Of a stretch of DNA of 64,000 bases, positions 20,571 to 44,985 are shown one piece after another; the stretch's first letter is position 1, and each line of letters starts with the position of its first letter. Source of the DNA: Auanema rhodensis (taxonomy: Eukaryota; Animalia; Nematoda). A model generated the notes under the pieces. The model saw nothing but the letters and a program-made list of their open reading frames with translations, was not told the origin of the DNA and did not search any database. Location of the stretch: positions 21,762,001 to 21,826,000 of the forward strand of contig OZ059894.1 of NCBI GenBank assembly GCA_964057225.1, read 5' to 3'. Position numbers and translations under genes: made by a program.

Positions 20571-23500
20571 CATTTTGACAAAAATTTTTTCGAAAAATTT
20601 CATAATAATTTAGCAAAAAGTAGATGTTTTTAGATTCCTTTTTTTGAGGCAAAGACGATGGACAATGTTATTCAACGAAAAAATTGATTCTTCAGGGTGA
20701 AAATCGAGGATATAAGTGTGAACTTATATCAGTTGATATCTCGGTGCATTTTTAAGCTAGCGCAAATCTGATAACACAGATCGACGCAGCTTAAAAATCC
20801 GCATCGAATGCACTATACTACATTGAGAAACGCTTAATACAAAAATTAGTTATGTTCGTTTGAAAAATGATGCATTAGTGTATGTTGAGTTTCCATGTAC
20901 ACTCAACATTGCTTCCAAAAACATTTTGACAAAAATTTTTTCGAAAAATTTCATAATAATTTAGCAAAAAGTAGATGTTTTTAGATTCCTGTTTTTAAGG
21001 CAAAGACGATGGACAATGTTATTCAACGAAAAAATTAATTCTTCAGGGTGAAAATCGAGGATATAAGTGTGAACTTATATCAGTTGATATCTCGGTGCAT
21101 TTTGAAGCTAGCGCAATTCTGATAGCACAGATCGACGCAGCTTAAAAATCCGCATCGAATGCACTATACTACATCAAGAAACGCTTGATACAAAAATTAG
21201 TTATGATCGTTTGAAAAATGATGCATTAGTGTATGTTGAGTTTCCATGTACACTCAACATTGCTTCCAAAAACATTTTGACAAAAATTTTTTCGAAAAAT
21301 TTCAAAATAATTTAGCAAAAAGTAGATGTTTTTAGATTCCTTTTTTTGAGGCAAAGACGATGGACAATGTTATTCAACGAAAAAATTGATTCTTCAGGGT
21401 GAAAATCGAGGATATAAGTGTGAACTTATATCAGTTGATATCTCGGTGCATTTTTAAGCTAGCGCAAATCTGATAACACAGATCGACGCAGCTTAAAAAT
21501 CCGCATCGAATGCACTATACTACATTGAGAAACGCTTAATACAAAAATTAGTTATGATCGTTTGAAAAATGATGCATTAGTGTATGTTGAGTTTCCATGT
21601 ACACTCAACATTGCTTCCAAAAACATTTTGACAAAAATTTTTTCGAAAAATTTCATAATAATTTAGCAAAAAGTAGATGTTTTTAGATTCCTGTTTTTAA
21701 GGCAAAGACGATGGACAATGTTATTCAACGAAAAAATTAATTCTTCAGGGTGAAAATCGAGGATATAAGTGTGAACTTATATCAGTTGATATCTCGGTGC
21801 ATTTTGAAGCTAGCGCAAATCTGATAACACAGATCGACGCAGCTTAAAAATCCGCATCGAATGCACTATACTACATTGAGAAACGCTTAATACAAAAATT
21901 AGTTATGATCGTTTGAAAAATGATGCATTAGTGTATGTTGAGTTTCCATGTACACTCAACATTGCTTCAAAAAACATTTTGACAAAAATTTTTTCGAAAA
22001 ATTTCATAATAATTTAGCAAAAAGTAGATGTTTTTAGATTCCTGTTTTTAAGGCAAAGACGATGGACAATGTTATTCAACGAAAAAATTAATTCTTCAGG
22101 GTGAAAATCGAGGATATAAGTGTGAACTTATATCAGTTGATATCTCGGTGCATTTTGAAGCTAGCGCAAATTTGATAACACAGATCGACGCAGCTTAAAA
22201 ATCCGCATCGAATGCACTATACTACATTGAGAAACGCTTGATACAAAAATTAGTTATGATCGTTTGAAAAATGATGCATTAGTGTATGTTGAGTTTCCAT
22301 GTACACTCAACATTGCTTCCAAAAACATTTTGACAAAAATTTTTTCGAAAAATTTCATAATAATTTAGCAAAAAGTAGATGTTTTTAGATTCCTGTTTTT
22401 AAGGCAAAGACGATGGACAATGTTATTCAACGAAAAAATTAATTCTTCAGGGTGAAAATCGAGGATATAAGTGTGAACTTATATCAGTTGATATCTCGGT
22501 GCATTTTTAAGCTAGCGCAAATTTGATAACACAGATCGACGCAGCTTAAAAATCCGCATCGAATGCACTATACTACATTGAGAAACGCTTGATACAAAAA
22601 TTAGTTATGTTCGTTTGAAAAATGATGCATTAGTGTATGTTGAGTTTCCATGTACACTCAACATTGCTTCAAAAAACATTTTGACAAAAATTTTTTCGAA
22701 AAATTTCAAAATAATTTAGCAAAAAGTAGATGTTTTTAGATTCCTTTTTTTAAGGCAAAGACGATGGACAATGTTATTCAACGAAAAAATTAATTCTTCA
22801 GGGTGAAAATCGAGGATATAAGTGTGAACTTATATCAGTTGATATCTCGGTGCATTTTTAAGCTAGCGCAAATTTGATAACACAGATCGACGCAGCTTAA
22901 AAATCCGCATCGAATGCACTATACTACATTGAGAAACGCTTGATACAAAAATTAGTTATGTTCGTTTGAAAAATGATGCATTAGTGTATGTTGAGTTTCC
23001 ATGTACACTCAACATTGCTTCAAAAAACATTTTGACAAAAATTTTTTCGAAAAATTTCAAAATAATTTAGCAAAAAGTAGATGTTTTTAGATTCCATTTT
23101 TCAAGGCAAAGACGATAGACAATGTTATTCAACGAAAAAATTAATTCTTCAGGGTGAAAATCGAGGATATAAGTGTGAACTTATATCAGTTGATATCTCG
23201 GTGCATTTTTAAGCTAGCGCAAATCTGATAACACAGATCGACGCAGCTTAAAAATCCGCATCGAATGCACTATACAACATTGAGAAACGCTTAATACAAA
23301 AATTAGTTATGTTCGTTTGAAAAATGATGCATTAGTGTATGTTGAGTTTCCATGTACACTCAACATTGCTTCAAAAAACATTTTGACAAAAATTTTTTCG
23401 AAAAATTTCAAAATAATTTAGCAAAAAGTAGATGTTTTTAGATTCCATTTTTCAAGGCAAAGACGATAGACAATGTTATTCAACGAAAAAATTAATTCTT

Positions 23501-24999
23501 CAGGGTGAAAATCGAGGATATAAGTGTGAACTTATATCAGTTGATATCTCGGTGCATTTTTAAGCTAGCGCAAATCTGATAACACAGATCGACGCAGCTT
23601 AAAAATCCGCATCGAATGCACTATACTACATCAAGAAACGCTTGATACAAAAATTAGTTATGATCGTTTGAAAAATGATGCATTAGTGTATGTTGAGTTT
23701 CCATGTACACTCAACATTGCTTCCAAAAACATTTTGACAAAAATTTTTTCGAAAAATTTCAAAATAATTTAGCAAAAAGTAGATGTTTTTAGATTCCATT
23801 TTTCAAGGCAAAGACGATAGACAATGTTATTCAACGAAAAAATTAATTCTTCAGGGTGAAAATCGAGGATATAAGTGTGAACTTATATCAGTTGATATCT
23901 CGGTGCATTTTTAAGCTAGCGCAAATCTGATAACACAGATCGACGCAGCTTGAAAAACCGCATCGAATGCACTATACTACATTAAGAAACGCTTAATACA
24001 AAAATTAGTTATGATCGTTTGAAAAATGATGCATTAGTGTATGTTGAGTTTCCATGTACACTCAACATTGCTTCCAAAAACATTTTGACAAAAATTTTTT
24101 CGAAAAATTTCAAAATAATTTAGCAAAAAGTAGATGTTTTTAGATTCCATTTTTCAAGGCAAAGACGATAGACAATGTTATTCAACGAAAAAATTAATTC
24201 TTCAGGGTGAAAATCGAGGATATAAGTGTGAACTTATATCAGTTGATATCTCGGTGCATTTTTAAGCTAGCGCAAATCTGATAACACAGATCGACGCAGC
24301 TTAAAAATCCGCATCGAATGCACTATACAACATTGAGAAACGCTTAATACAAAAATTAGTTATGATCGTTTGAAAAATGATGCATTAGTGTGTGTTGAGT
24401 TTCCATGTACACTCAACATTGCTTCCAAAAACATTTTGACAAAAATTTTTTCGAAAAATATCAAAATAATTTAGCAAAAAGTAGATGTTTTTAGATTCCA
24501 TTTTTCAAGGCAAAGACGATAGACAAGGTTATTCAACGAAAAAATTAATTCTTCAGGGTGAAAATCGAGGATATAAGTGTGAACTTATATCAGTTGATAT
24601 CTCGGTGCATTTTTAAGCTAGCGCAAATCTGATAACACAGATCGACGCAGCTTGAAAAACCGCATCGAATGCACTATACTACATTAAGAAACGCTTAATA
24701 CAAAAATTAGTTATGATCGTTTGAAAAATGATGCATTAGTGTATGTTGAGTTTCCATGTACACTCAACATTGCTTCCAAAAACATTTTGACAAAAATTTT
24801 TTCGAAAAATTTCATAATAATTTAGCAAAAAGTAGATGTTTTTAGATTCCTGTTTTTAAGGCAAAGACGATGGACAATGTTATTCAACGAAAAAATTAAT
24901 TCTTCAGGGTGAAAATCGAGGATATAAGTGTGAACTTATATCAGTTGATATCTCGGTGCATTTTTAAGCTAGCGCAAATTTGATAACACAGATCGACGC

Positions 25000-27850
25000 A
25001 GCTTAAAAATCCGCATCGAATGCACTATACTACATTGAGAAACGCTTGATACAAAAATTAGTTATGTTCGTTTGAAAAATGATGCATTAGTGTATGTTGA
25101 GTTTCCATGTACACTCAACATTGCTTCAAAAAACATTTTGACAAAAATTTTTTCGAAAAATTTCAAAATAATTTAGCAAAAAGTAGATGTTTTTAGATTC
25201 CTTTTTTTAAGGCAAAGACGATGGACAATGTTATTCAACGAAAAAATTAATTCTTCAGGGTGAAAATCGAGGATATAAGTGTAAACTTATATCAGTTGAT
25301 ATCTCGGTGCATTTTTAAGCTAGCGCAAATCTGATAACACAGATCGACGCAGCTTAAAAATCCGCATCGAATGCACTATACTACATTGAGAAACGCTTAA
25401 TACACAAATTAGTTATGATCGTTTGAAAAATGATGCATTAGTGTATGTTGAGTTTCCATGTACACTCAACATTGCTTCCAAAAACATTTTGACAAAAATT
25501 TTTTCGAAAAATTTCAAAATAATTTAGCAAAAAGTAGATGTTTTTAGATTCCTTTTTTTAAGGCAAAGACGATGGACAATGTTATTCAACGAAAAAATTA
25601 ATTCTTCAGGGTGAAAATCGAGGATATAAGTGTGAACTTATATCAGTTGATATCTCGGTGCATTTTTAAGCTAGCGCAAATCTGATAACACAGATCGACG
25701 CAGCTTGAAAAACCGCATCGAATGCACTATACTACATTGAGAAACGCTTAATACAAAAATTAGTTATGATCGTTTGAAAAATGATGCATTAGTGTATGTT
25801 GAGTTTCCATGTACACTCAACATTGCTTCCAAAAACATTTTGACAAAAATTTTTTCGAAAAATTTCAAAATAATTTAGCAAAAAGTAGATGTTTTTAGAT
25901 TCCATTTTTCAAGGCAAAGACGATAGACAATGTTATTCAACGAAAAAATTAATTCTTCAGGGTGAAAATCGAGGATATAAGTGTGAACTTATATCAGTTG
26001 ATATCTCGGTGCATTTTTAAGCTAGCGCAAATCTGATAACACAGATCGACGCAGCTTAAAAATCCGCATCGAATGCACTATACAACATTGAGAAACGCTT
26101 AATACAAAAATTAGTTATGATCGTTTGAAAAATGATGCATTAGTGTGTGTTGAGTTTCCATGTACACTCAACATTGCTTCCAAAAACATTTTGACAAAAA
26201 TTTTTTCGAAAAATTTCAAAATAATTTAGCAAAAAGTAGATGTTTTTAGATTCCATTTTTCAAGGCAAAGACGATAGACAAGGTTATTCAACGAAAAAAT
26301 TAATTCTTCAGGGTGAAAATCGAGGATATAAGTGTGAACTTATATCAGTTGATATCTCGGTGCATTTTTAAGCTAGCGCAAATCTGATAACACAGATCGA
26401 CGCAGCTTAAAAATCCGCATCGAATGCACTATACTACATTGAGAAACGCTTGATACAAAAATTAGTTATGTTCGTTTGAAAAATGATGCATTAGTGTATG
26501 TTGAGTTTCCATGTACACTCAACATTGCTTCAAAAAACATTTTGACAAAAATTTTTTCGAAAAATTTCAAAATAATTTAGCAAAAAGTAGATGTTTTTAG
26601 ATTCCTTTTTTTAAGGCAAAGACGATGGACAATGTTATTCAACGAAAAAATTAATTCTTCAGGGTGAAAATCGAGGATATAAGTGTAAACTTATATCAGT
26701 TGATATCTCGGTGCATTTTTAAGCTAGCGCAAATCTGATAACACAGATCGACGCAGCTTAAAAATCCGCATCGAATGCACTATACTACATTGAGAAACGC
26801 TTAATACACAAATTAGTTATGATCGTTTGAAAAATGATGCATTAGTGTATGTTGAGTTTCCATGTACACTCAACATTGCTTCCAAAAACATTTTGACAAA
26901 AATTTTTTCGAAAAATTTCAAAATAATTTAGCAAAAAGTAGATGTTTTTAGATTCCTTTTTTTAAGGCAAAGACGATGGACAATGTTATTCAACGAAAAA
27001 ATTAATTCTTCAGGGTGAAAATCGAGGATATAAGTGTGAACTTATATCAGTTGATATCTCGGTGCATTTTTAAGCTAGCGCAAATCTGATAACACAGATC
27101 GACGCAGCTTGAAAAACCGCATCGAATGCACTATACTACATTGAGAAACGCTTAATACAAAAATTAGTTATGATCGTTTGAAAAATGATGCATTAGTGTA
27201 TGTTGAGTTTCCATGTACACTCAACATTGCTTCCAAAAACATTTTGACAAAAATTTTTTCGAAAAATTTCAAAATAATTTAGCAAAAAGTAGATGTTTTT
27301 AGATTCCATTTTTCAAGGCAAAGACGATAGACAATGTTATTCAACGAAAAAATTAATTCTTCAGGGTGAAAATCGAGGATATAAGTGTGAACTTATATCA
27401 GTTGATATCTCGGTGCATTTTTAAGCTAGCGCAAATCTGATAACACAGATCGACGCAGCTTAAAAATCCGCATCGAATGCACTATACAACATTGAGAAAC
27501 GCTTAATACAAAAATTAGTTATGATCGTTTGAAAAATGATGCATTAGTGTGTGTTGAGTTTCCATGTACACTCAACATTGCTTCCAAAAACATTTTGACA
27601 AAAATTTTTTCGAAAAATTTCAAAATAATTTAGCAAAAAGTAGATGTTTTTAGATTCCATTTTTCAAGGCAAAGACGATAGACAAGGTTATTCAACGAAA
27701 AAATTAATTCTTCAGGGTGAAAATCGAGGATATAAGTGTGAACTTATATCAGTTGATATCTCGGTGCATTTTTAAGCTAGCGCAAATCTGATAACACAGA
27801 TCGACGCAGCTTAAAAATCCGCATCGAATGCACTATACTACATTGAGAAA
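25000..27850 (+). repeat. 4-monomer (1404-bp) tandem duplication
   Basis: Markers GTGTAAAC (~25279/~26683), CTTGAAAAACCG (~25704/~27108), ATACAACA (~26080/~27484) and GACAAGGTT (~26277/~27681) are all offset by 1404. Confidence 0.8.
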
Positions 27851-30800
27851 CGCTTGATACAAAAATTAGTTATGATCGTTTGAAAAATGATGCATTAGTG
27901 TATGTTGAGTTTCCATGTACACACAACATTGCTTCCAAAAACATTTTGACAAAAATTTTTTCGAAAAATTTCAAAATAATTTAGCAAAAAGTAGATGTTT
28001 TTAGATTCCTTTTTTTAAGGCAAAGACGATGGACAATGTTATTCAACGAAAAAATTAATTCTTCAGGGTGAAAATCGAGGATATAAGTGTAAACTTATAT
28101 CAGTTGATATCTCGGTGCATTTTTAAGCTAGCGCAAATCTGATAACACAGATCGACGCAGCTTAAAAATCCGCATCGAATGCACTATACTACATTGAAAA
28201 ACGCTTAATACACAAATTAGTTATGATCGTTTGAAAAATGATGCATTAGTGTATGTTGAGTTTCCATGTACACTCAACATTGCTTCCAAAAACATTTTGA
28301 CAAAAATTTTTTCGAAAAATTTCAAAATAATTTAGCAAAAAGTAGATGTTTTTAGATTCCTTTTTTTAAGGCAAAGACGATGGACAATGTTATTCAACGA
28401 AAAAATTAATTCTTCAGGGTGAAAATCGAGGATATAAGTGTAAACTTATATCAGTTGATATCTCGGTGCATTTTTAAGCTAGCGCAAATCTGATAACACA
28501 GATCGACGCAGCTTAAAAATCCGCATCGAATGCACTATACTACATTGAGAAACGCTTAATACAAAAATTAGTTATGATCGTTTGAAAAATGATGCATTAG
28601 TGTATGTTGAGTTTCCATGTACACTCAACATTGCTTCCAAAAACATTTTGACAAAAATTTTTTCGAAAAATTTCAAAATAATTTAGCAAAAAGTAGATGT
28701 TTTTAGATTCCTTTTTTTAAGGCAAAGACGATGGACAATGTTATTCAACGAAAAAATTAATTCTTCAGGGTGAAAATCGAGGATATAAGTGTAAACTTAT
28801 ATCAGTTGATATCTCGGTGCATTTTTAAGCTAGCGCAAATCTGATAACACAGATCGACGCAGCTTAAAAATCCGCATCGAATGCACTATACTACATTGAG
28901 AAACGCTTAATACACAAATTAGTTATGATCGTTTGAAAAATGATGCATTAGTGTATGTTGAGTTTCCATGTACACTCAACATTGCTTCCAAAAACATTTT
29001 GACAAAAATTTTTTCGAAAAATTTCAAAATAATTTAGCAAAAAGTAGATGTTTTTAGATTCCTTTTTTTAAGGCAAAGACGATGGACAATGTTATTCAAC
29101 GAAAAAATTAATTCTTCAGGGTGAAAATCGAGGATATAAGTGTGAACTTATATCAGTTGATATCTCGGTGCATTTTTAAGCTAGCGCAAATCTGATAACA
29201 CAGATCGACGCAGCTTAAAAATCCGCATCGAATGCACTATACTACATTGAGAAACGCTTAATACAAAAATTAGTTATGATCGTTTGAAAAATGATGCATT
29301 AGTGTATGTTGAGTTTCCATGTACACTCAACATTGCTTCCAAAAACATTTTGACAAAAATTTTTTCGAAAAATTTTATAATAATTTAGCAAAAAGTAGAT
29401 GTTTTTAGATTCCTGTTTTTAAGGCAAAGACGATGGACAATGTTATTCAACGAAAAAATTAATTCTTCAGGGTGAAAATCGAGGATATAAGTGTGAACTT
29501 ATATCAGTTGATATCTCGGTGCATTTTTAAGCTAGCGCAAATTTGATAACACAGATCGACGCAGCTTAAAAATCCGCATCGAATGCACTATACTACATTG
29601 AGAAACGCTTGATACAAAAATTAGTTATGTTCGTTTGAAAAATGATGCATTAGTGTATGTTGAGTTTCCATGTACACTCAACATTGCTTCCAAAAACATT
29701 TTGACAAAAATTTTTTCGAAAAATTTCAAAATAATTTAGCAAAAAGTAGATGTTTTTAGATTCCATTTTTCAAGGCAAAGACGATAGACAATGTTATTCA
29801 ACGAAAAAATTAATTCTTCAGGGTGAAAATCGAGGATATAAGTGTGAACTTATATCAGTTGATATCTCGGTGCATTTTTAAGCTAGCGCAAATCTGATAA
29901 CACAGATCGACGCAGCTTAAAAATCCGCATCGAATGCACTATACAACATTGAGAAACGCTTAATACAAAAATTAGTTATGATCGTTTGAAAAATGATGCA
30001 TTAGTGTGTGTTGAGTTTCCATGTACACTCAACATTGCTTCCAAAAACATTTTGACAAAAATTTTTTCGAAAAATTTCAAAATAATTTAGCAAAAAGTAG
30101 ATGTTTTTAGATTCCATTTTTCAAGGCAAAGACGATAGACAAGGTTATTCAACGAAAAAATTAATTCTTCAGGGTGAAAATCGAGGATATAAGTGTGAAC
30201 TTATATCAGTTGATATCTCGGTGCATTTTTAAGCTAGCGCAAATCTGATAACACAGATCGACGCAGCTTGAAAAACCGCATCGAATGCACTATACTACAT
30301 TGAGAAACGCTTAATACAAAAATTAGTTATGATCGTTTGAAAAATGATGCATTAGTGTATGTTGAGTTTCCATGTACACTCAACATTGCTTCAAAAAACA
30401 TTTTGACAAAAATTTTTTCGAAAAATTTCATAATAATTTAGCAAAAAGTAGATGTTTTTAGATTCCTGTTTTTAAGGCAAAGACGATGGACAATGTTATT
30501 CAACGAAAAAATTAATTCTTCAGGGTGAAAATCGAGGATATAAGTGTGAACTTATATCAGTTGATATCTCGGTGCATTTTTAAGCTAGCGCAAATTTGAT
30601 AACACAGATCGACGCAGCTTAAAAATCCGCATCGAATGCACTATACTACATTGAGAAACGCTTGATACAAAAATTAGTTATGTTCGTTTGAAAAATGATG
30701 CATTAGTGTATGTTGAGTTTCCATGTACACTCAACATTGCTTCAAAAAACATTTTGACAAAAATTTTTTCGAAAAATTTCAAAATAATTTAGCAAAAAGT

Positions 30801-31290
30801 AGATGTTTTTAGATTCCTTTTTTTAAGGCAAAGACGATGGACAATGTTATTCAACGAAAAAATTAATTCTTCAGGGTGAAAATCGAGGATATAAGTGTAA
30901 ACTTATATCAGTTGATATCTCGGTGCATTTTTAAGCTAGCGCAAATCTGATAACACAGATCGACGCAGCTTAAAAATCCGCATCGAATGCACTATACTAC
31001 ATTGAGAAACGCTTAATACACAAATTAGTTATGATCGTTTGAAAAATGATGCATTAGTGTATGTTGAGTTTCCATGTACACTCAACATTGCTTCAAAAAA
31101 CATTTTGACAAAAATTTTTTCGAAAAATTTCAAAATAATTTAGCAAAAAGTAGATGTTTTTAAATTCCTTTTTTTAAGGCAAAGACGATGGACAATGTTA
31201 TTCAACGAAAAAATTAATTCTTCAGGGTGAAAATCGAGGATATAAGTGTGAACTTATATCAGTTGATATCTCGGTGCATTTTTAAGCTAG

Positions 31291-31320
31291 CGCAAATCTG
31301 ATCGAAAAAATTTTTGTCAA
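31291..31320. other. Orientation-switch (inversion) junction of the satellite array
   Basis: CGCAAATCTGA-T-CGAAAAAATTTTTGTCAA: the forward monomer stops at its position 63 (expected ...CTGATAACAC) and the reverse monomer starts at its position 235 (expected ...TTTTTCGAAAAAA). The T at 31302 is shared and there is no inserted sequence. Confidence 0.97.
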
Positions 31321-32825
31321 AATGTTTTTGGAAGCAATGTTGTGTGTACATGGAAACTCAACATACACTAATGCATCATTTTTCAAACGATCATAACTAA
31401 TTTTTGTATCAAGCGTTTCTCAATGTAGTATAGTGCATTCGATGCGGATTTTTAAGCTGCGTCGATCTGTGTTATCAGATTTGCGCTAGCTTAAAAATGC
31501 ACCGAGATATCAACTGATATAAGTTCACACTTATATCCTCGATTTTCACCCTGAAGAATTAATTTTTTCGTTGAATAACATTGTCCATCGTCTTTGCCTT
31601 AAAAAAAGGAATCTAAAAACATCTACTTTTTGCTAAATTATTTTGAAATTTTTCGAAAAAATTTTTGTCAAAATGTTTTTGGAAGCAATGTTGAGTGTAC
31701 ATGGAAACTCAACATACACTAATGCATCATTTTTCAAACGATCATAACTAATTTTTGTATCAAGCGTTTCTTGATGTAGTATAGTGCATTCGATGCGGAT
31801 TTTTAAGCTGCGTCGATCTGTGTTATCAAATTTGCGCTAGCGTAAAAATGCACCGAGATATCAACTGATATAAGTTCACACTTATATCCTCGATTTTCAC
31901 CCTGAAGAATTAATTTTTTCGTTGAATAACATTGTCCATCGTCTTTGCCTTGAAAAAAGAAATCTAAAAACATCTACTTTTTGCTAAATTATTTTGAAAT
32001 TTTTCGAAAAAATTTTTGTCAAAATGTTTTTGGAAGCAATGTTGAGTGTACATGGAAACTCAACATACACTAATGCATCATTTTTCAAACGATCATAACT
32101 AATTTTTGTATCAAGCGTTTCTTGATGTAGTATAGTGCATTCGATGCGGATTTTTAAGCTGCGTCGATCTGTGTTATCAGATTTGCGCTAGCGTAAAAAT
32201 GCACCGAGATATCAACTGATATAAGTTCACACTTATATCCTCGATTTTCACCCTGAAGAATTAATTTTTTCGTTGAATAACATTGTCCATCGTCTTTGCC
32301 TTGAAAAAAGAAATCTAAAAACATCTACTTTTTGCTAAATTATTTTGAAATTTTTCGAAAAAATTTTTGTCAAAATGTTTTTGGAAGCAATGTTGAGTGT
32401 ACATGGAAACTCAACATACACTAATGCATCATTTTTCAAACGATCATAACTAATTTGTGTATTAAGCGTTTCTCAATGTAGTATAGTGCATTCGATGCGG
32501 ATTTTTAAGCTGCGTCGATCTGTGTTATCAGATTTGCGCTAGCTTAAAAATGCACCGAGATATCAACTGATATAAGTTCACACTTATATCCTCGATTTTC
32601 ACCCTGAAGAATTAATTTTTTCGTTGAATAACATTGTCTATCGTCTTTGCCTTAAAAAATGGAATCTAAAAACATCTACTTTTTGCTAAATTATTTTGAA
32701 ATTTTTCGAAAAAATTTTTGTCAAAATGTTTTTGGAAGCAATGTTGAGTGTACATGGAAACTCAACATACACTAATGCATCATTTTTCAAACGATCATAA
32801 CTAATTTGTGTATTAAGCGTTTCTC

Positions 32826-32845
32826 AATGTAGTATGCGGATTTTT
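32826..32845. other. 12-bp deletion in one monomer (between 32835 and 32836)
   Basis: AGTAT|GCGGAT versus consensus AGTAT-AGTGCATTCGAT-GCGGAT, flanked by AT microhomology. Phase check: 39958-31546 = 24x351-12. Confidence 0.93.
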
Positions 32846-34899
32846 AAGCTGCGTCGATCTGTGTTATCAGATTTGCGCTAGCTTAAAAATGCACCGAGAT
32901 ATCAACTGATATAAGTTCACACTTATATCCTCGATTTTCACCCTGAAGAATTAATTTTTTCGTTGAATAACATTGTCCATCGTCTTTGCCTTGAAAAAAG
33001 AAATCTAAAAACATCTACTTTTTGCTAAATTATTTTGAAATTTTTCGAAAAAATTTTTGTCAAAATGTTTTTGGAAGCAATGTTGAGTGTACATGGAAAC
33101 TCAACATACACTAATGCATCATTTTTCAAACGATCATAACTAATTTGTGTATTAAGCGTTTCTCAATGTAGTATAGTGCATTCGATGCGGATTTTTAAGC
33201 TGCGTCGATCTGTGTTATCAGATTTGCGCTAGCTTAAAAATGCACCGAGATATCAACTGATATAAGTTCACACTTATATCCTCGATTTTCACCCTGAAGA
33301 ATTAATTTTTTCGTTGAATAACATTGTCCATCGTCTTTGCCTTGAAAAAAGAAATCTAAAAACATCTACTTTTTGCTAAATTATTTTGAAATTTTTCGAA
33401 AAAATTTTTGTCAAAATGTTTTTGGAAGCAATGTTGAGTGTACATGGAAACTCAACATACACTAATGCATCATTTTTCAAACGATCATAACTAATTTGTG
33501 TATTAAGCGTTTCTCAATGTAGTATAGTGCATTCGATGTGGATTTTTAAGCTGCGTCGATCTGTGTTATCAGATTTGCGCTAGCTTAAAAATGCACCGAG
33601 ATATCAACTGATATAAGTTCACACTTATATCCTCGATTTTCACCCTGAAGAATTAATTTTTTCGTTGAATAACATTGTCCATCGTCTTTGCCTTGGAAAA
33701 AGGAATCTAAAAACATCTACTTTTTGCTAAATTATTTTGAAATTTTTCGAAAAAATTTTTGTCAAAATGTTTTTGGAAGCAATGTTGAGTGTACATGGAA
33801 ACTCAACATACACTAATGCATCATTTTTCAAACGATCATAACTAATTTGTGTATTAAGCGTTTCTTGATGTAGTATAGTGCATTCGATGCGGATTTTTAA
33901 GCTGCGTCGATCTGTGTTATCAGATTTGCGCTAGCTTAAAAATGCACCGAGATATCAACTGATATAAGTTCACACTTATATCCTCGATTTTCACCCTGAA
34001 GAATTAATTTTTTCGTTGAATAACATTGTCCATCGTCTTTGCCTTAAAAAAAGGAATCTAAAAACATCTACTTTTTGCTAAATTATTTTGAAATTTTTCG
34101 AAAAAATTTTTGTCAAAATGTTTTTGGAAGCAATGTTGAGTGTACATGGAAACTCAACATACACTAATGCATCATTTTTCAAACGATCATAACTAATTTG
34201 TGTATTAAGCGTTTCTTGATGTAGTATAGTGCATTCGATGCGGATTTTTAAGATGCGTCGATCTGTGTTATCAGATTTGCGCTAGCTTAAAAATGCACCG
34301 AGATATCAACTGATATAAGTTCACACTTATATCCTCGATTTTCACCCTGAAGAATTAATTTTTTCGTTGAATAACATTGTCCATCGTCTTTGCCTTGAAA
34401 AAAGAAATCTAAAAACATCTACTTTTTGCTAAATTATTTTGAAATTTTTCGAAAAAATTTTTGTCAAAATGTTTTTGGAAGCAATGTTGAGTGTACATGG
34501 AAACTCAACATACACTAATGCATCATTTTTCAAACGATTATAACTAATTTGTGTATTAAGCGTTTCTCAATGTAGTATAGTGCATTCGATGCGGATTTTT
34601 AAGCTGCGTCGATCTGTGTTATCAGATTTGCGCTAGCTTAAAAATGCACCGAGATATCAACTGATATAAGTTCACACTTATATCCTCGATTTTCACCCTG
34701 AAGAATTAATTTTTTCGTTGAATAACATTGTCCATCGTCTTTGCCTTAAAAAAAGGAATCTAAAAACATCTACTTTTTGCTAAATTATTTTGAAATTTTT
34801 CGAAAAAATTTTTGTCAAAATGTTTTTGGAAGCAATGTTGAGTGTACATGGAAACTCAACATACACTAATGCATCATTTTTCAAACGATCATAACTAAT

Positions 34900-37800
34900 T
34901 TTTGTATCAAGCGTTTCTTGATGTAGTATAGTGCATTCGATGCGGATTTTTAAGCTGCGTCGATCTGTGTTATCAAATTTGCGCTAGCGTAAAAATGCAC
35001 CGAGATATCAACTGATATAAGTTCACACTTATATCCTCGATTTTCACCCTGAAGAATTAATTTTTTCGTTAAATAACATTGTCCATCGTCTTTGCCTTGA
35101 AAAAAGAAATCTAAAAACATCTACTTTTTGCTAAATTATTTTGAAATTTTTCGAAAAAATTTTTGTCAAAATGTTTTTGGAAGCAATGTTGAGTGTACAT
35201 GGAAACTCAACATACACTAATGCATCATTTTTCAAACGATCATAACTAATTTGTGTATTAAGCGTTTCTTGATGTAGTATAGTGCATTCGATGCGGATTT
35301 TTAAGCTGCGTCGATCTGTGTTATCAGATTTGCGCTAGCTTAAAAATGCACCGAGATATCAACTGATATAAGTTCACACTTATATCCTCGATTTTCACCC
35401 TGAAGAATTAATTTTTTCGTTGAATAACATTGTCCATCGTCTTTGCCTTGAAAAAAGAAATCTAAAAACATCTACTTTTTGCTAAATTATTTTGAAATTT
35501 TTCGAAAAAATTTTTGTCAAAATGTTTTTGGAAGCAATGTTGAGTGTACATGGAAACTCAACATACACTAATGCATCATTTTTCAAACGATTATAACTAA
35601 TTTGTGTATTAAGCGTTTCTCAATGTAGTATAGTGCATTCGATGCGGATTTTTAAGCTGCGTCGATCTGTGTTATCAAATTTGCGCTAGCGTAAAAATGC
35701 ACCGAGATATCAACTGATATAAGTTCACACTTATATCCTCGATTTTCACCCTGAAGAATTAATTTTTTCGTTAAATAACATTGTCCATCGTCTTTGCCTT
35801 GAAAAAAGAAATCTAAAAACATCTACTTTTTGCTAAATTATTTTGAAATTTTTCGAAAAAATTTTTGTCAAAATGTTTTTGGAAGCAATGTTGAGTGTAC
35901 ATGGAAACTCAACATACACTAATGCATCATTTTTCAAACGATCATAACTAATTTGTGTATTAAGCGTTTCTTGATGTAGTATAGTGCATTCGATGCGGAT
36001 TTTTAAGCTGCGTCGATCTGTGTTATCAGATTTGCGCTAGCTTAAAAATGCACCGAGATATCAACTGATATAAGTTCACACTTATATCCTCGATTTTCAC
36101 CCTGAAGAATTAATTTTTTCGTTGAATAACATTGTCCATCGTCTTTGCCTTAAAAAAAGGAATCTAAAAACATCTACTTTTTGCTAAATTATTTTGAAAT
36201 TTTTCGAAAAAATTTTTGTCAAAATGTTTTTGGAAGCAATGTTGAGTGTACATGGAAACTCAACATACACTAATGCATCATTTTTCAAACGATCATAACT
36301 AATTTGTGTATTAAGCGTTTCTTGATGTAGTATAGTGCATTCGATGCGGATTTTTAAGCTGCGTCGATCTGTGTTATCAGATTTGCGCTAGCGTAAAAAT
36401 GCACCGAGATATCAACTGATATAAGTTCACACTTATATCCTCGATTTTCACCCTGAAGAATTAATTTTTTCGTTAAATAACATTGTCCATCGTCTTTGCC
36501 TTGAAAAAAGAAATCTAAAAACATCTACTTTTTGCTAAATTATTTTGAAATTTTTCGAAAAAATTTTTGTCAAAATGTTTTTGGAAGCAATGTTGAGTGT
36601 ACATGGAAACTCAACATACACTAATGCATCATTTTTCAAACGATCATAACTAATTTGTGTATTAAGCGTTTCTTGATGTAGTATAGTGCATTCGATGCGG
36701 ATTTTTAAGCTGCGTCGATCTGTGTTATCAGATTTGCGCTAGCTTAAAAATGCACCGAGATATCAACTGATATAAGTTCACACTTATATCCTCGATTTTC
36801 ACCCTGAAGAATTAATTTTTTCGTTGAATAACATTGTCCATCGTCTTTGCCTTGAAAAAAGAAATCTAAAAACATCTACTTTTTGCTAAATTATTTTGAA
36901 ATTTTTCGAAAAAATTTTTGTCAAAATGTTTTTGGAAGCAATGTTGAGTGTACATGGAAACTCAACATACACTAATGCATCATTTTTCAAACGATTATAA
37001 CTAATTTGTGTATTAAGCGTTTCTCAATGTAGTATAGTGCATTCGATGCGGATTTTTAAGCTGCGTCGATCTGTGTTATCAAATTTGCGCTAGCGTAAAA
37101 ATGCACCGAGATATCAACTGATATAAGTTCACACTTATATCCTCGATTTTCACCCTGAAGAATTAATTTTTTCGTTAAATAACATTGTCCATCGTCTTTG
37201 CCTTGAAAAAAGAAATCTAAAAACATCTACTTTTTGCTAAATTATTTTGAAATTTTTCGAAAAAATTTTTGTCAAAATGTTTTTGGAAGCAATGTTGAGT
37301 GTACATGGAAACTCAACATACACTAATGCATCATTTTTCAAACGATCATAACTAATTTGTGTATTAAGCGTTTCTTGATGTAGTATAGTGCATTCGATGC
37401 GGATTTTTAAGCTGCGTCGATCTGTGTTATCAGATTTGCGCTAGCTTAAAAATGCACCGAGATATCAACTGATATAAGTTCACACTTATATCCTCGATTT
37501 TCACCCTGAAGAATTAATTTTTTCGTTGAATAACATTGTCCATCGTCTTTGCCTTAAAAAAAGGAATCTAAAAACATCTACTTTTTGCTAAATTATTTTG
37601 AAATTTTTCGAAAAAATTTTTGTCAAAATGTTTTTGGAAGCAATGTTGAGTGTACATGGAAACTCAACATACACTAATGCATCATTTTTCAAACGATTAT
37701 AACTAATTTGTGTATTAAGCGTTTCTCAATGTAGTATAGTGCATTCGATGCGGATTTTTAAGCTGCGTCGATCTGTGTTATCAAATTTGCGCTAGCGTAA

Positions 37801-38100
37801 AAATGCACCGAGATATCAACTGATATAAGTTCACACTTATATCCTCGATTTTCACCCTGAAGAATTAATTTTTTCGTTAAATAACATTGTCCATCGTCTT
37901 TGCCTTGAAAAAAGAAATCTAAAAACATCTACTTTTTGCTAAATTATTTTGAAATTTTTCGAAAAAATTTTTGTCAAAATGTTTTTGGAAGCAATGTTGA
38001 GTGTACATGGAAACTCAACATACACTAATGCATCATTTTTCAAACGATCATAACTAATTTTTGTATCAAGCGTTTCTTGATGTAGTATAGTGCATTCGAT
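34900..38100 (-). repeat. Dimeric (702-bp) higher-order repeat, about 5 copies
   Basis: The variant CTAGCGTAAAAA (C at 34988, 35690, 36392, 37094, 37796) is each time followed by the variant CGTTAAATAA. Confidence 0.85.
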
Positions 38101-41100
38101 GCGGATTTTTAAGCTGCGTCGATCTGTGTTATCAGATTTGCGCTAGCTTAAAAATGCACCGAGATATCAACTGATATAAGTTCACACTTATATCCTCGAT
38201 TTTCACCCTGAAGAATTAATTTTTTCGTTGAATAACATTGTCCATCGTCTTTGCCTTGAAAAAAGAAATCTAAAAACATCTACTTTTTGCTAAATTATTT
38301 TGAAATTTTTCGAAAAAATTTTTGTCAAAATGTTTTTGGAAGCAATGTTGAGTGTACATGGAAACTCAACATACACTAATGCATCATTTTTCAAACGATT
38401 ATAACTAATTTGTGTATTAAGCGTTTCTCAATGTAGTATAGTGCATTCGATGCGGATTTTTAAGCTGCGTCGATCTGTGTTATCAGATTTGCGCTAGCTT
38501 AAAAATGCACCGAGATATCAACTGATATAAGTTCACACTTATATCCTCGATTTTCACCCTGAAGAATTAATTTTTTCGTTGAATAACATTGTCCATCGTC
38601 TTTGCCTTGAAAAAAGAAATCTAAAAACATCTACTTTTTGCTAAATTATTTTGAAATTTTTCGAAAAAATTTTTGTCAAAATGTTTTTGGAAGCAATGTT
38701 GAGTGTACATGGAAACTCAACATACACTAATGCATCATTTTTCAAACGATCATAACTAATTTGTGTATTAAGCGTTTCTCAATGTAGTATAGTGCATTCG
38801 ATGCGGATTTTTAAGCTGCGTCGATCTGTGTTATCAGATTTGCGCTAGCTTAAAAATGCACCGAGATATCAACTGATATAAGTTCACACTTATATCCTCG
38901 ATTTTCACCCTGAAGAATTAATTTTTTCGTTGAATAACATTGTCCATCGTCTTTGCCTTGAAAAAAGAAATCTAAAAACATCTACTTTTTGCTAAATTAT
39001 TTTGAAATTTTTCGAAAAAATTTTTGTCAAAATGTTTTTGGAAGCAATGTTGAGTGTACATGGAAACTCAACATACACTAATGCATCATTTTTCAAACGA
39101 TTATAACTAATTTGTGTATTAAGCGTTTCTCAATGTAGTATAGTGCATTCGATGCGGATTTTTAAGCTGCATCGATCTGTGTTATCAGATTTGCGCTAGC
39201 TTAAAAATGCACCGAGATATCAACTGATATAAGTTCACACTTATATCCTCGATTTTCACCCTGAAGAATTAATTTTTTCGTTGAATAACATTGTCCATCG
39301 TCTTTGCCTTGAAAAAAGAAATCTAAAAACATCTACTTTTTGCTAAATTATTTTGAAATTTTTCGAAAAAATTTTTGTCAAAATGTTTTTGGAAGCAATG
39401 TTGAGTGTACATGGAAACTCAACATACACTAATGCATCATTTTTCAAACGATCATAACTAATTTGTGTATTAAGCGTTTCTCAATGTAGTATAGTGCATT
39501 CGATGCGGATTTTTAAGCTGCGTCGATCTGTGTTATCAGATTTGCGCTAGCTTAAAAATGCACCGAGATATCAACTGATATAAGTTCACACTTATATCCT
39601 CGATTTTCACCCTGAAGAATTAATTTTTTCGTTGAATAACATTGTCCATCGTCTTTGCCTTAAAAAAAGGAATCTAAAAACATCTACTTTTTGCTAAATT
39701 ATTTTGAAATTTTTCGAAAAAATTTTTGTCAAAATGTTTTTGGAAGCAATGTTGAGTGTACATGGAAACTCAACATACACTAATGCATCATTTTTCAAAC
39801 GATCATAACTAATTTTTGTATCAAACGTTTCTCAATGTAGTATAGTGCATTCGATGTGGATTTTTAAGCTGCGTCGATCTGTGTTATCAGATTTGCGCTA
39901 GCTTAAAAATGCACCGAGATATCAACTGATATAAGTTCACACTTATATCCTCGATTTTCACCCTGAAGAATTAATTTTTTCGTTGAATAACATTGTCCAT
40001 CGTCTTTGCCTTGGAAAAAGGAATCTAAAAACATCTACTTTTTGCTGAATTATTCTGAAATTTTTCGAAAAAATTTTTGTCAAAATGTTTTTGGAAGCAA
40101 TGTTGAGTGTACATGGAAACTCAACATACACTAATGCATCATTTTTCAAACGATCATAACTAATTTTTGTATCAAACGTTTCTCAATGTAGTATAGTGCA
40201 TTCGATGTGGATTTTTAAGCTGCGTCGATCTGTGTTATCAGATTTGCGCTAGCTTAAAAATGCACCGAGATATCAACTGATATAAGTTCACACTTATATC
40301 CTCGATTTTCACCCTGAAGAATTAATTTTTTCGTTGAATAACATTGTCCATCGTCTTTGCCTTAAAAAAAGGAATCTAAAAACATCTACTTTTTGCTAAA
40401 TTATTTTGAAATTTTTCGAAAAAATTTTTGTCAAAATGTTTTTGGAAGCAATGTTGAGTGTACATGGAAACTCAACATACACTAATGCATCATTTTTCAA
40501 ACGATCATAACTAATTTTTGTATCAAACGTTTCTCAATGTAGTATAGTGCATTCGATGTGGATTTTTAAGCTGCGTCGATCTGTGTTATCAGATTTGCGC
40601 TAGCTTAAAAATGCACCGAGATATCAACTGATATAAGTTCACACTTATATCCTCGATTTTCACCCTGAAGAATTAATTTTTTCGTTGAATAACATTGTCC
40701 ATCGTCTTTGCCTTGAAAAAAGAAATCTAAAAACATCTACTTTTTGCTAAATTATTTTGAAATTTTTCGAAAAAATTTTTGTCAAAATGTTTTTGGAAGC
40801 AATGTTGAGTGTACATGGAAACTCAACATACACTAATGCATCATTTTTCAAACGATCATAACTAATTTGTGTATTAAGCGTTTCTCAATGTAGTATAGTG
40901 CATTCGATGCGGATTTTTAAGCTGCGTCGATCTGTGTTATCAGATTTGCGCTAGCTTAAAAATGCACCGAGATATCAACTGATATAAGTTCACACTTATA
41001 TCCTCGATTTTCACCCTGAAGAATTAATTTTTTCGTTGAATAACATTGTCCATCGTCTTTGCCTTGAAAAAAGAAATCTAAAAACATCTACTTTTTGCTA

Positions 41101-44960: not shown

Positions 44961-44985
44961 AAATTATTTTGAAGTTTTTGGAAGC
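44961..44985. other. 27-bp deletion in one monomer (between 44973 and 44974)
   Basis: TTTTGAA|GTTTTTGG versus consensus TTTTGAA-ATTTTTCGAAAAAATTTTTGTCAAAAT-GTTTTTGG. Phase check: 45196-43468 = 5x351-27. Confidence 0.95.

Follow-up and report, generated by a model that had tools for sequence, protein, structure and literature searches.

A head-to-head inversion joint in a 351-bp satellite array of Auanema rhodensis, with both sides in predicted hairpin loops

A satellite array with one change of direction

The window, meaning the whole stretch of 64,000 nt from Auanema rhodensis that was analyzed, consists entirely of one AT-rich satellite (31% GC) with a repeat unit of 351 bp. TRF describes it as an array on the + strand from 7 to 31302 (period 351, 89.2 copies, 97% matches) followed by an array of the reverse complement from 31302 to 64000 (93.3 copies, 97% matches). 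Polarity changes at 31302, where the AT skew and the GC skew both flip sign, and this is the single orientation switch of the satellite within the window (n=1). Unit position 1 was set at window position 31241; the unit numbering of a preliminary description of this DNA equals these positions plus 1. The array is built up as follows.

7 to 31302, + strand: forward arm, made of 89 full 351-bp units and a truncated last unit at 31241-31302 (unit 1-62)
31302 to 31303, strand not applicable: inversion joint, head to head, between T62 and the complement of G233; 1 bp (T) fits either side, and there is no filler
31303 to 64000, - strand: reverse arm, made of a truncated first unit at 31303-31535 (unit 233 down to 1) and then 92 full reverse units
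31303 to 31473, - strand: unpaired spacer of the giant inverted repeat, 171 nt (unit 233 down to 63), beyond which the arms are complementary unit for unit

Unit spacing in the forward arm is exactly 351 in 89 of 89 cases. Deletions occur in the reverse arm, namely two of 1 bp, one of 12 bp and one of 27 bp, and its units are offset in phase by 171 nt from those of the forward arm. Taken as a whole, positions 7-64000 form a giant imperfect inverted repeat whose arms, each longer than 31 kb, are about 97.6% complementary and are separated by a spacer of only 171 nt. In many organisms, giant inverted repeats are fragile or serve as a source of hairpin RNA. A disguised gene array can be ruled out as the identity of the satellite, as a search of the unit against Rfam matched no family, a tRNA search of the unit returned none, and the unit contains no open reading frame of at least 50 amino acids.

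At the joint itself, the forward arm ends in ...GCGCAAATCTGAT, its final base being T62 (31302), and the reverse arm begins with CGAAAAAATTTTTGTC..., starting at the complement of G233 (31303) and running downward through the unit. The T at 31302 is compatible with either parent; the two sides therefore overlap by 1 bp, with no filler between them. The preliminary description had given the same overlap and the same lack of filler, and both the sequence and a microhomology count of 1 bear this out. Randomly placed joints of this unit have a microhomology of 0 bp in 52% of cases and of 1 bp in 28%. The 20-mer that spans the joint occurs once in the 64-kb window. Compared to the consensus, the truncated forward unit has 0 differences in 62 positions and the truncated reverse unit 2 in 233, so that the truncated units are not more diverged than other units of the array. 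Folding of the sequence across the joint detected no new hairpin made by the joint itself (z +0.55 to +0.79).

Hairpins of the unit and the position of the two breaks

Both sides of the joint fall within sequences of dyad symmetry in the unit. Intact reference copies of the two, here called hairpin A and dyad B, lie in the last full forward unit.

30927 to 30977, + strand: hairpin A, intact reference copy, 51 nt, with 11-nt arms that are 100% complementary
31278 to 31302, + strand: 5' half of hairpin A retained at the joint (unit 38-62), with the break 1-2 nt into the 6-nt loop
31116 to 31127, + strand: dyad B, intact reference copy, TTTTTCGAAAAA, with its centre between 31121 and 31122

Hairpin A occupies unit positions 38-88 and is predicted to comprise an 11-bp outer stem (38-48 with 78-88), three further pairs and an apical stem ATCTG/CAGAT (56-60 with 67-71) closed by the loop 61-66. 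As single-stranded DNA its predicted folding energy is -13.9 kcal/mol (z -5.2), and none of 200 shuffled sequences folds as well. It is the strongest hairpin of the unit and dominates the fold ensemble of the whole unit. Dyad B is a palindrome with 6-bp arms at unit positions 227-238, centred between 232 and 233. Its arms reach 8-9 nt when one bulge is allowed. The motif is of low complexity (T5CGA5) and its fold is weak, with a z of -1.6 and 14 of 200 shuffles (7%) folding as well.

The preliminary description placed the end of the forward arm inside the 6-nt loop of hairpin A and the start of the reverse arm close to the centre of dyad B. Both placements hold: T62 lies in the loop 61-66, once the numbering is shifted by one, and G233 lies 1-2 nt from the boundary between 232 and 233. 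On both sides the break is thus 1-2 nt from the centre of a dyad, that of hairpin A being between 63 and 64. In an ensemble of 2000 sampled structures per strand, computed with DNA parameters, the left break has a hairpin-loop probability of 0.92-1.0. For the right break, placed between 233 and 234, the strands differ, with loop probabilities of 0.88 (top) and 0.38 (bottom). Placed between 234 and 235, which amounts to assigning the shared T to the right arm, it has a loop probability of 0.13-0.16.

Elsewhere in the array, small dyads coincide with deletions. Among 181 units there are just two multi-bp deletions, at the boundaries 32835-32836 and 44973-44974, and each removes a small dyad. The first, of 12 bp (unit 93-104), takes away most of the mini-hairpin GCATCGAATGC and has a 2-bp flanking repeat. 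The second, of 27 bp (unit 213-239), takes away all of dyad B together with the 5' arm of its outer stem and has no flanking repeat.

How unusual it is for both breaks to lie at hairpin apices depends on how an apex is defined. Perfect dyads were counted on the circular consensus, and a break was scored as an apex site if it fell in a loop or at most 2 nt from a centre. If stems must reach 5 bp and loops may not exceed 8 nt, the unit has 18 perfect dyads and apex sites make up 16.8% of it, a share that gives 2.8% when squared. Allowing loops of up to 12 nt raises the apex sites to 21.9% and the square to 4.8%, the number of perfect dyads of at least 5 bp being 18-23 over these settings. Stems of at least 4 bp give 33.6% and 11%, and a cut-off of at least 6 bp would drop the apical stem of hairpin A altogether. 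The sampled ensemble yields a mean hairpin-loop probability of 0.17-0.18 per site, with 12-13% of sites above 0.5. The unit is rich in such elements, as it also contains 11 inverted-repeat pairs of at least 8 nt. Under definitions wide enough to include both hits, a double apex hit is therefore expected by chance in about 2-5% of cases. The strictest value, about 0.5%, is obtained when one break must be placed in the strongest hairpin's loop, which offers 7 of 351 sites, a requirement that was itself set post hoc.

The earlier remark that apices take up little of the unit is only partly right in view of these figures: their share is 12-13% for sites with an ensemble loop probability above 0.5, 17-22% for perfect dyads with stems of at least 5 bp and 34% for stems of at least 4 bp. 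The accompanying judgement, that a double hit at a single junction is suggestive, agrees with a chance of about 2-5% at n=1. By the fold predictions the double hit is nominally unusual but suggestive only, since the apex definition is post hoc and a single joint was available.

One possible account of this placement, to be taken tentatively, is that hairpin A and dyad B extrude, either in single-stranded DNA at a replication fork or as small cruciforms, that their loops are nicked or opened, and that the resulting ends are joined in inverted order. The satellite's own hairpins would then set where the array breaks and flips, with the loops of A and B as preferred sites of cleavage or stalling, a proposal that we regard as possible, though less probable than an ordinary joint. 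Topoisomerase II or a hairpin-opening nuclease of the Mre11 type might, speculatively, be the loop cutter. Several observations are consistent with such breakage. Both breaks lie in predicted loops (0.92-1.0 on the left, 0.88 for the top strand on the right), hairpin A is exceptional for its composition at z -5.2, and a near-blunt joint is compatible with the joining of ends left by opened loops. In vitro, the loop of an alpha-satellite hairpin is nicked by human topoisomerase II alpha (PMC2577340), and both multi-bp deletions of the right arm removed small dyads. Against this stand the post-hoc definition and the single junction, as well as the properties of dyad B, whose 6-bp arms (z -1.6) are far too short for a stable cruciform and whose loop probability is 0.38 on the bottom strand and falls to 0.13-0.16 if the shared T is assigned to the right arm. 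Nor is hairpin A depleted in variable columns, of which 7 out of 44 lie inside it, compared to 6.4 expected.

The same letters can also be decomposed in a different manner. The joint reads GATCGA, a string that also occupies unit 69-74 on the far side of hairpin A's loop. The forward arm could accordingly have run to unit 74, lost 9 bp (63-71) between two GAT repeats that lie across the loop, and been joined through the 4-bp TCGA, by microhomology-mediated joining or by a template switch. The microhomology is then 4 bp (TCGA) with a 9-bp deletion, as opposed to 1 bp in the simple reading. Among random pairs of breakpoints, 1.7-3.4% have a joint 6-mer that recurs no more than 20 nt from one parent, a value about as low as that of the double apex hit. 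This decomposition is nevertheless improbable, as it needs two events where one suffices. That two post-hoc stories reach similar p-values shows how easily such coincidences arise in this sequence. Because of the post-hoc definition, the single joint, the dyad-rich unit, the weak dyad B and an equally improbable alternative decomposition, the double hit falls short of evidence. The location of both sides of the joint in predicted hairpin loops is best treated as a coincidence so far indistinguishable from chance.

The two arms and the kind of event

If the joint had arisen by fold-back, the arms on either side of it would be expected to mirror each other. Over all pairs, forward and reverse units differ by a mean of 8.3 in 351 positions, compared to 7.7 and 7.9 within the arms, which corresponds to a divergence per site of 2.4% between arms and 2.2-2.3% within them. 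A unit-by-unit distance matrix has no mirror diagonal below the mean of 8.3, and the strings of variants along the array reveal local higher-order patterns and joint-adjacent subfamilies that differ between the arms. Judged from their sequences, the arms are not a recent inverted duplication, because there is no low mirror diagonal and because their variant strings and subfamilies differ.

The variants also document the fine structure of the array, with units labelled L in the forward arm and R in the reverse arm. Over about 22 units on each side of the joint (23500-39300), R0-R22 are mostly 132C with 278T, and L0-L20 are of types such as 10A/132C and 280A/301A. Variant 45C is found in the right arm only, and the consensus sequences of the two arms differ at unit position 286 only (T vs C). 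Variants seen exactly twice delineate local higher-order repeats, with 22 of 24 such doubletons lying within one arm. Their periods are 17 units (L35/52, L38/55, L43/60), 15 (L70/85) and 7 (R38/45, R39/46), along with the shorter periods of 5 (R61/66, R62/67, R80/85) and 2 (R47/49, R87/89/91).

A fold-back duplication, or a fold-back chimera generated during sequencing, is excluded, as the arms are not mirror copies of each other. An origin by fold-back or by origin-dependent inverted-repeat amplification (ODIRA) was likewise rejected, the two sides of the joint lying in two dyads that are 171 nt out of phase and not in one. A two-step model, in which a direct deletion from 62 to 232 is followed by fold-back at dyad B, is more complex, and the upstream mirror half that belongs to it is absent.

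Copying from a template within the array deserves separate consideration, since one unit of the forward arm matches the start of the reverse arm.

27731 to 28081, + strand: forward unit L9, which shares variant 193A with the first reverse unit and with no further unit of the window

L9 lies 3.3 kb upstream and is identical to the first reverse unit; the exact reverse-complement match extends over 277 nt (31303-31579 vs 27687-27963), variant 193A included. A template switch with copying from the sister or from the same strand would fit this identity. Past its first unit, however, the right arm does not mirror L10, L11 and so on, and the 277-nt identity is bounded solely by a variant of L10's own. 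The window units carry 66 singleton variants, among which about 1-2 coincidences would be expected by chance, and a second cross-arm doubleton is present. Furthermore, 193A (window position 31343) accounts for about 2.8% of word depth in the public sequencing run X1 and hence is not a mutation private to two units; it accordingly marks a minor subfamily. With a match that ends at the variant of L10, 1-2 chance doubletons expected and 193A at about 2.8% in X1, the case for copying of the first reverse unit from L9 is weak.

The joint could, lastly, be an artefact of assembly or of sequencing, such as a chimeric long read or a mis-join, and be absent from the organism. Logan short-read contigs of four public runs (three organisms, three studies) were compared with a 350-base stretch that holds each unit position once. 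The satellite is extremely abundant in all four. Among the contigs listed from these runs, none bridges 31302/31303, and nearly all stop at 31302 as loose ends that continue into normal forward or reverse units. The sole well-supported joint between opposite strands in these contigs is the normal continuity of units. Of 36 sampled words, the best runs contain a share of 0.92, roughly the value that a loss of the words spanning the junction would produce, a value that other explanations fit too. Yet satellites are collapsed in short-read contigs, from which a joint present in one copy amid many thousands of units can be expected to be missing. For satellites, Logan contigs show presence and not absence, and they neither support nor refute the joint. 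Fold-back chimeras, moreover, yield exact mirror arms, which these are not, and mis-joins based on overlaps create no new joint that is free of homology. An artefact is thus quite unlikely. We infer the reality of the joint in the organism from the assembly.

Beyond the joint, the same resource includes 18 public DNA runs that contain the satellite. Words of the satellite occur in runs X1-X16, labelled as seven different organisms, with shares from 0.92 down to 0.19, and the 351-bp unit may be common to related species or strains. In run X1 only, many low-depth contig joints with different starting places converge on window position 31389 (unit ~147), with a short side of 21 nt; noisy contigs may have produced them artificially. 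No match was returned when metagenomes were scanned with a conserved 25-mer of the satellite.

The reading that we favor, with a probability of about 0.5, is that of a real polarity switch through an ordinary, near-blunt joint of an inversion, with no demonstrable influence of structure on its position. Two double-strand ends, one after unit position 62 and the other beside 233, would have been joined nearly blunt, and the 1-bp overlap without filler, the signature of classical end joining, suggests that this pathway was used. A block of several units was most likely inverted, with one of its ends at the joint and the other beyond the window. Some doubt attaches to this explanation because the left break falls in the loop of the most stable hairpin and because 1-2 nt separate the right break from a palindrome centre. 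The strictest, post-hoc estimate of about 0.5% for the double hit is hard to dismiss entirely.

Dyad-associated rearrangements and satellite inversions elsewhere

Breaks at the centres of dyads are known from the human palindromic AT-rich repeats (PATRRs). The t(11;22) and other PATRR translocations have breaks at most a few nucleotides from the dyad centre in each partner, and little or no microhomology where the partners meet. Breakage of this type requires near-perfect AT-rich palindromes hundreds of bp long, from which cruciforms extrude, and PATRR junctions have recurred many times. The satellite joint resembles them in that both breaks lie 1-2 nt from dyad centres and the joint is near-blunt. 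It differs in being one event and in the nature of its dyads, a palindrome of 12 bp and a bulged, imperfect hairpin of 51 nt whose loop measures 6 nt. Fold-back inversions and ODIRA, which proceed through hairpin priming or template switching at the fork, leave mirror-image arms centred on one short inverted repeat. Like the present locus, they have a head-to-head junction surrounded by many short inverted repeats. Here, in contrast, the arms are not mirrors, the mirror match ending after 277 nt, and two dyads 171 nt apart are involved.

A closer parallel comes from beetle satellites. The available sections of two studies of Tribolium (PMC12581902, PMC13081366) describe, for TfSat01 of T. freemani and TmSat1/2 of T. 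madens, a "macro-dyad symmetry" in which multi-kb subarrays of one satellite lie in opposite orientation. As described there, an inversion segment consists of an abruptly truncated unit followed by a reverse unit that is truncated elsewhere, with nothing in between and no extra variability. The inversion types are few and conserved, have loops of 9-27 bp, and have been copied to many loci and chromosomes (PMC12581902, PMC13081366). Those portions of the two accounts do not tie the truncation sites to hairpins within the unit, and the corresponding part of one of them states that macro-dyad symmetries are documented in Tribolium only (PMC13081366). The nematode array has the same general architecture, with 89 forward and 93 reverse units of one 351-bp satellite arranged as opposite subarrays. 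As in Tribolium, the truncations lie at different positions of the unit (62 and 233), foreign sequence is absent and the truncated copies are not more diverged. Unlike the recurring beetle types with their 9-27-bp loops, the spacer here is 171 nt and there is one joint in the 64-kb window. The array joint adds a further case to a known class, the inversion points of satellite macro-dyad symmetries.

A human enzyme is known to act on a satellite hairpin: topoisomerase II alpha makes a single-strand nick in the loop of an alpha-satellite hairpin in vitro (PMC2577340). By analogy, a hairpin that is encoded by a satellite and nicked in its loop makes this enzyme a candidate for the left break. That case differs in that it concerns single-strand cleavage of a human satellite in vitro.

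Many complete assemblies now reveal satellite arrays that switch orientation internally, and the pervasiveness and conservation of such switches in Tribolium have led to the proposal that they play a structural role at centromeres. This locus contributes a clean, base-resolved data point for a survey of breakpoints, as one junction cannot show clustering. Should breakpoints prove to cluster in the unit's own hairpin loops, there would be a concrete and testable mechanism by which small dyads nucleate giant inverted repeats, and the macro-dyad organization would extend beyond beetles. If breakage is indeed directed by structure, dyads within the unit would seed the multi-kb inverted subarrays, the macro-dyad symmetries, both here and in Tribolium, and small non-B DNA motifs would be linked to the large-scale architecture of satellite arrays.
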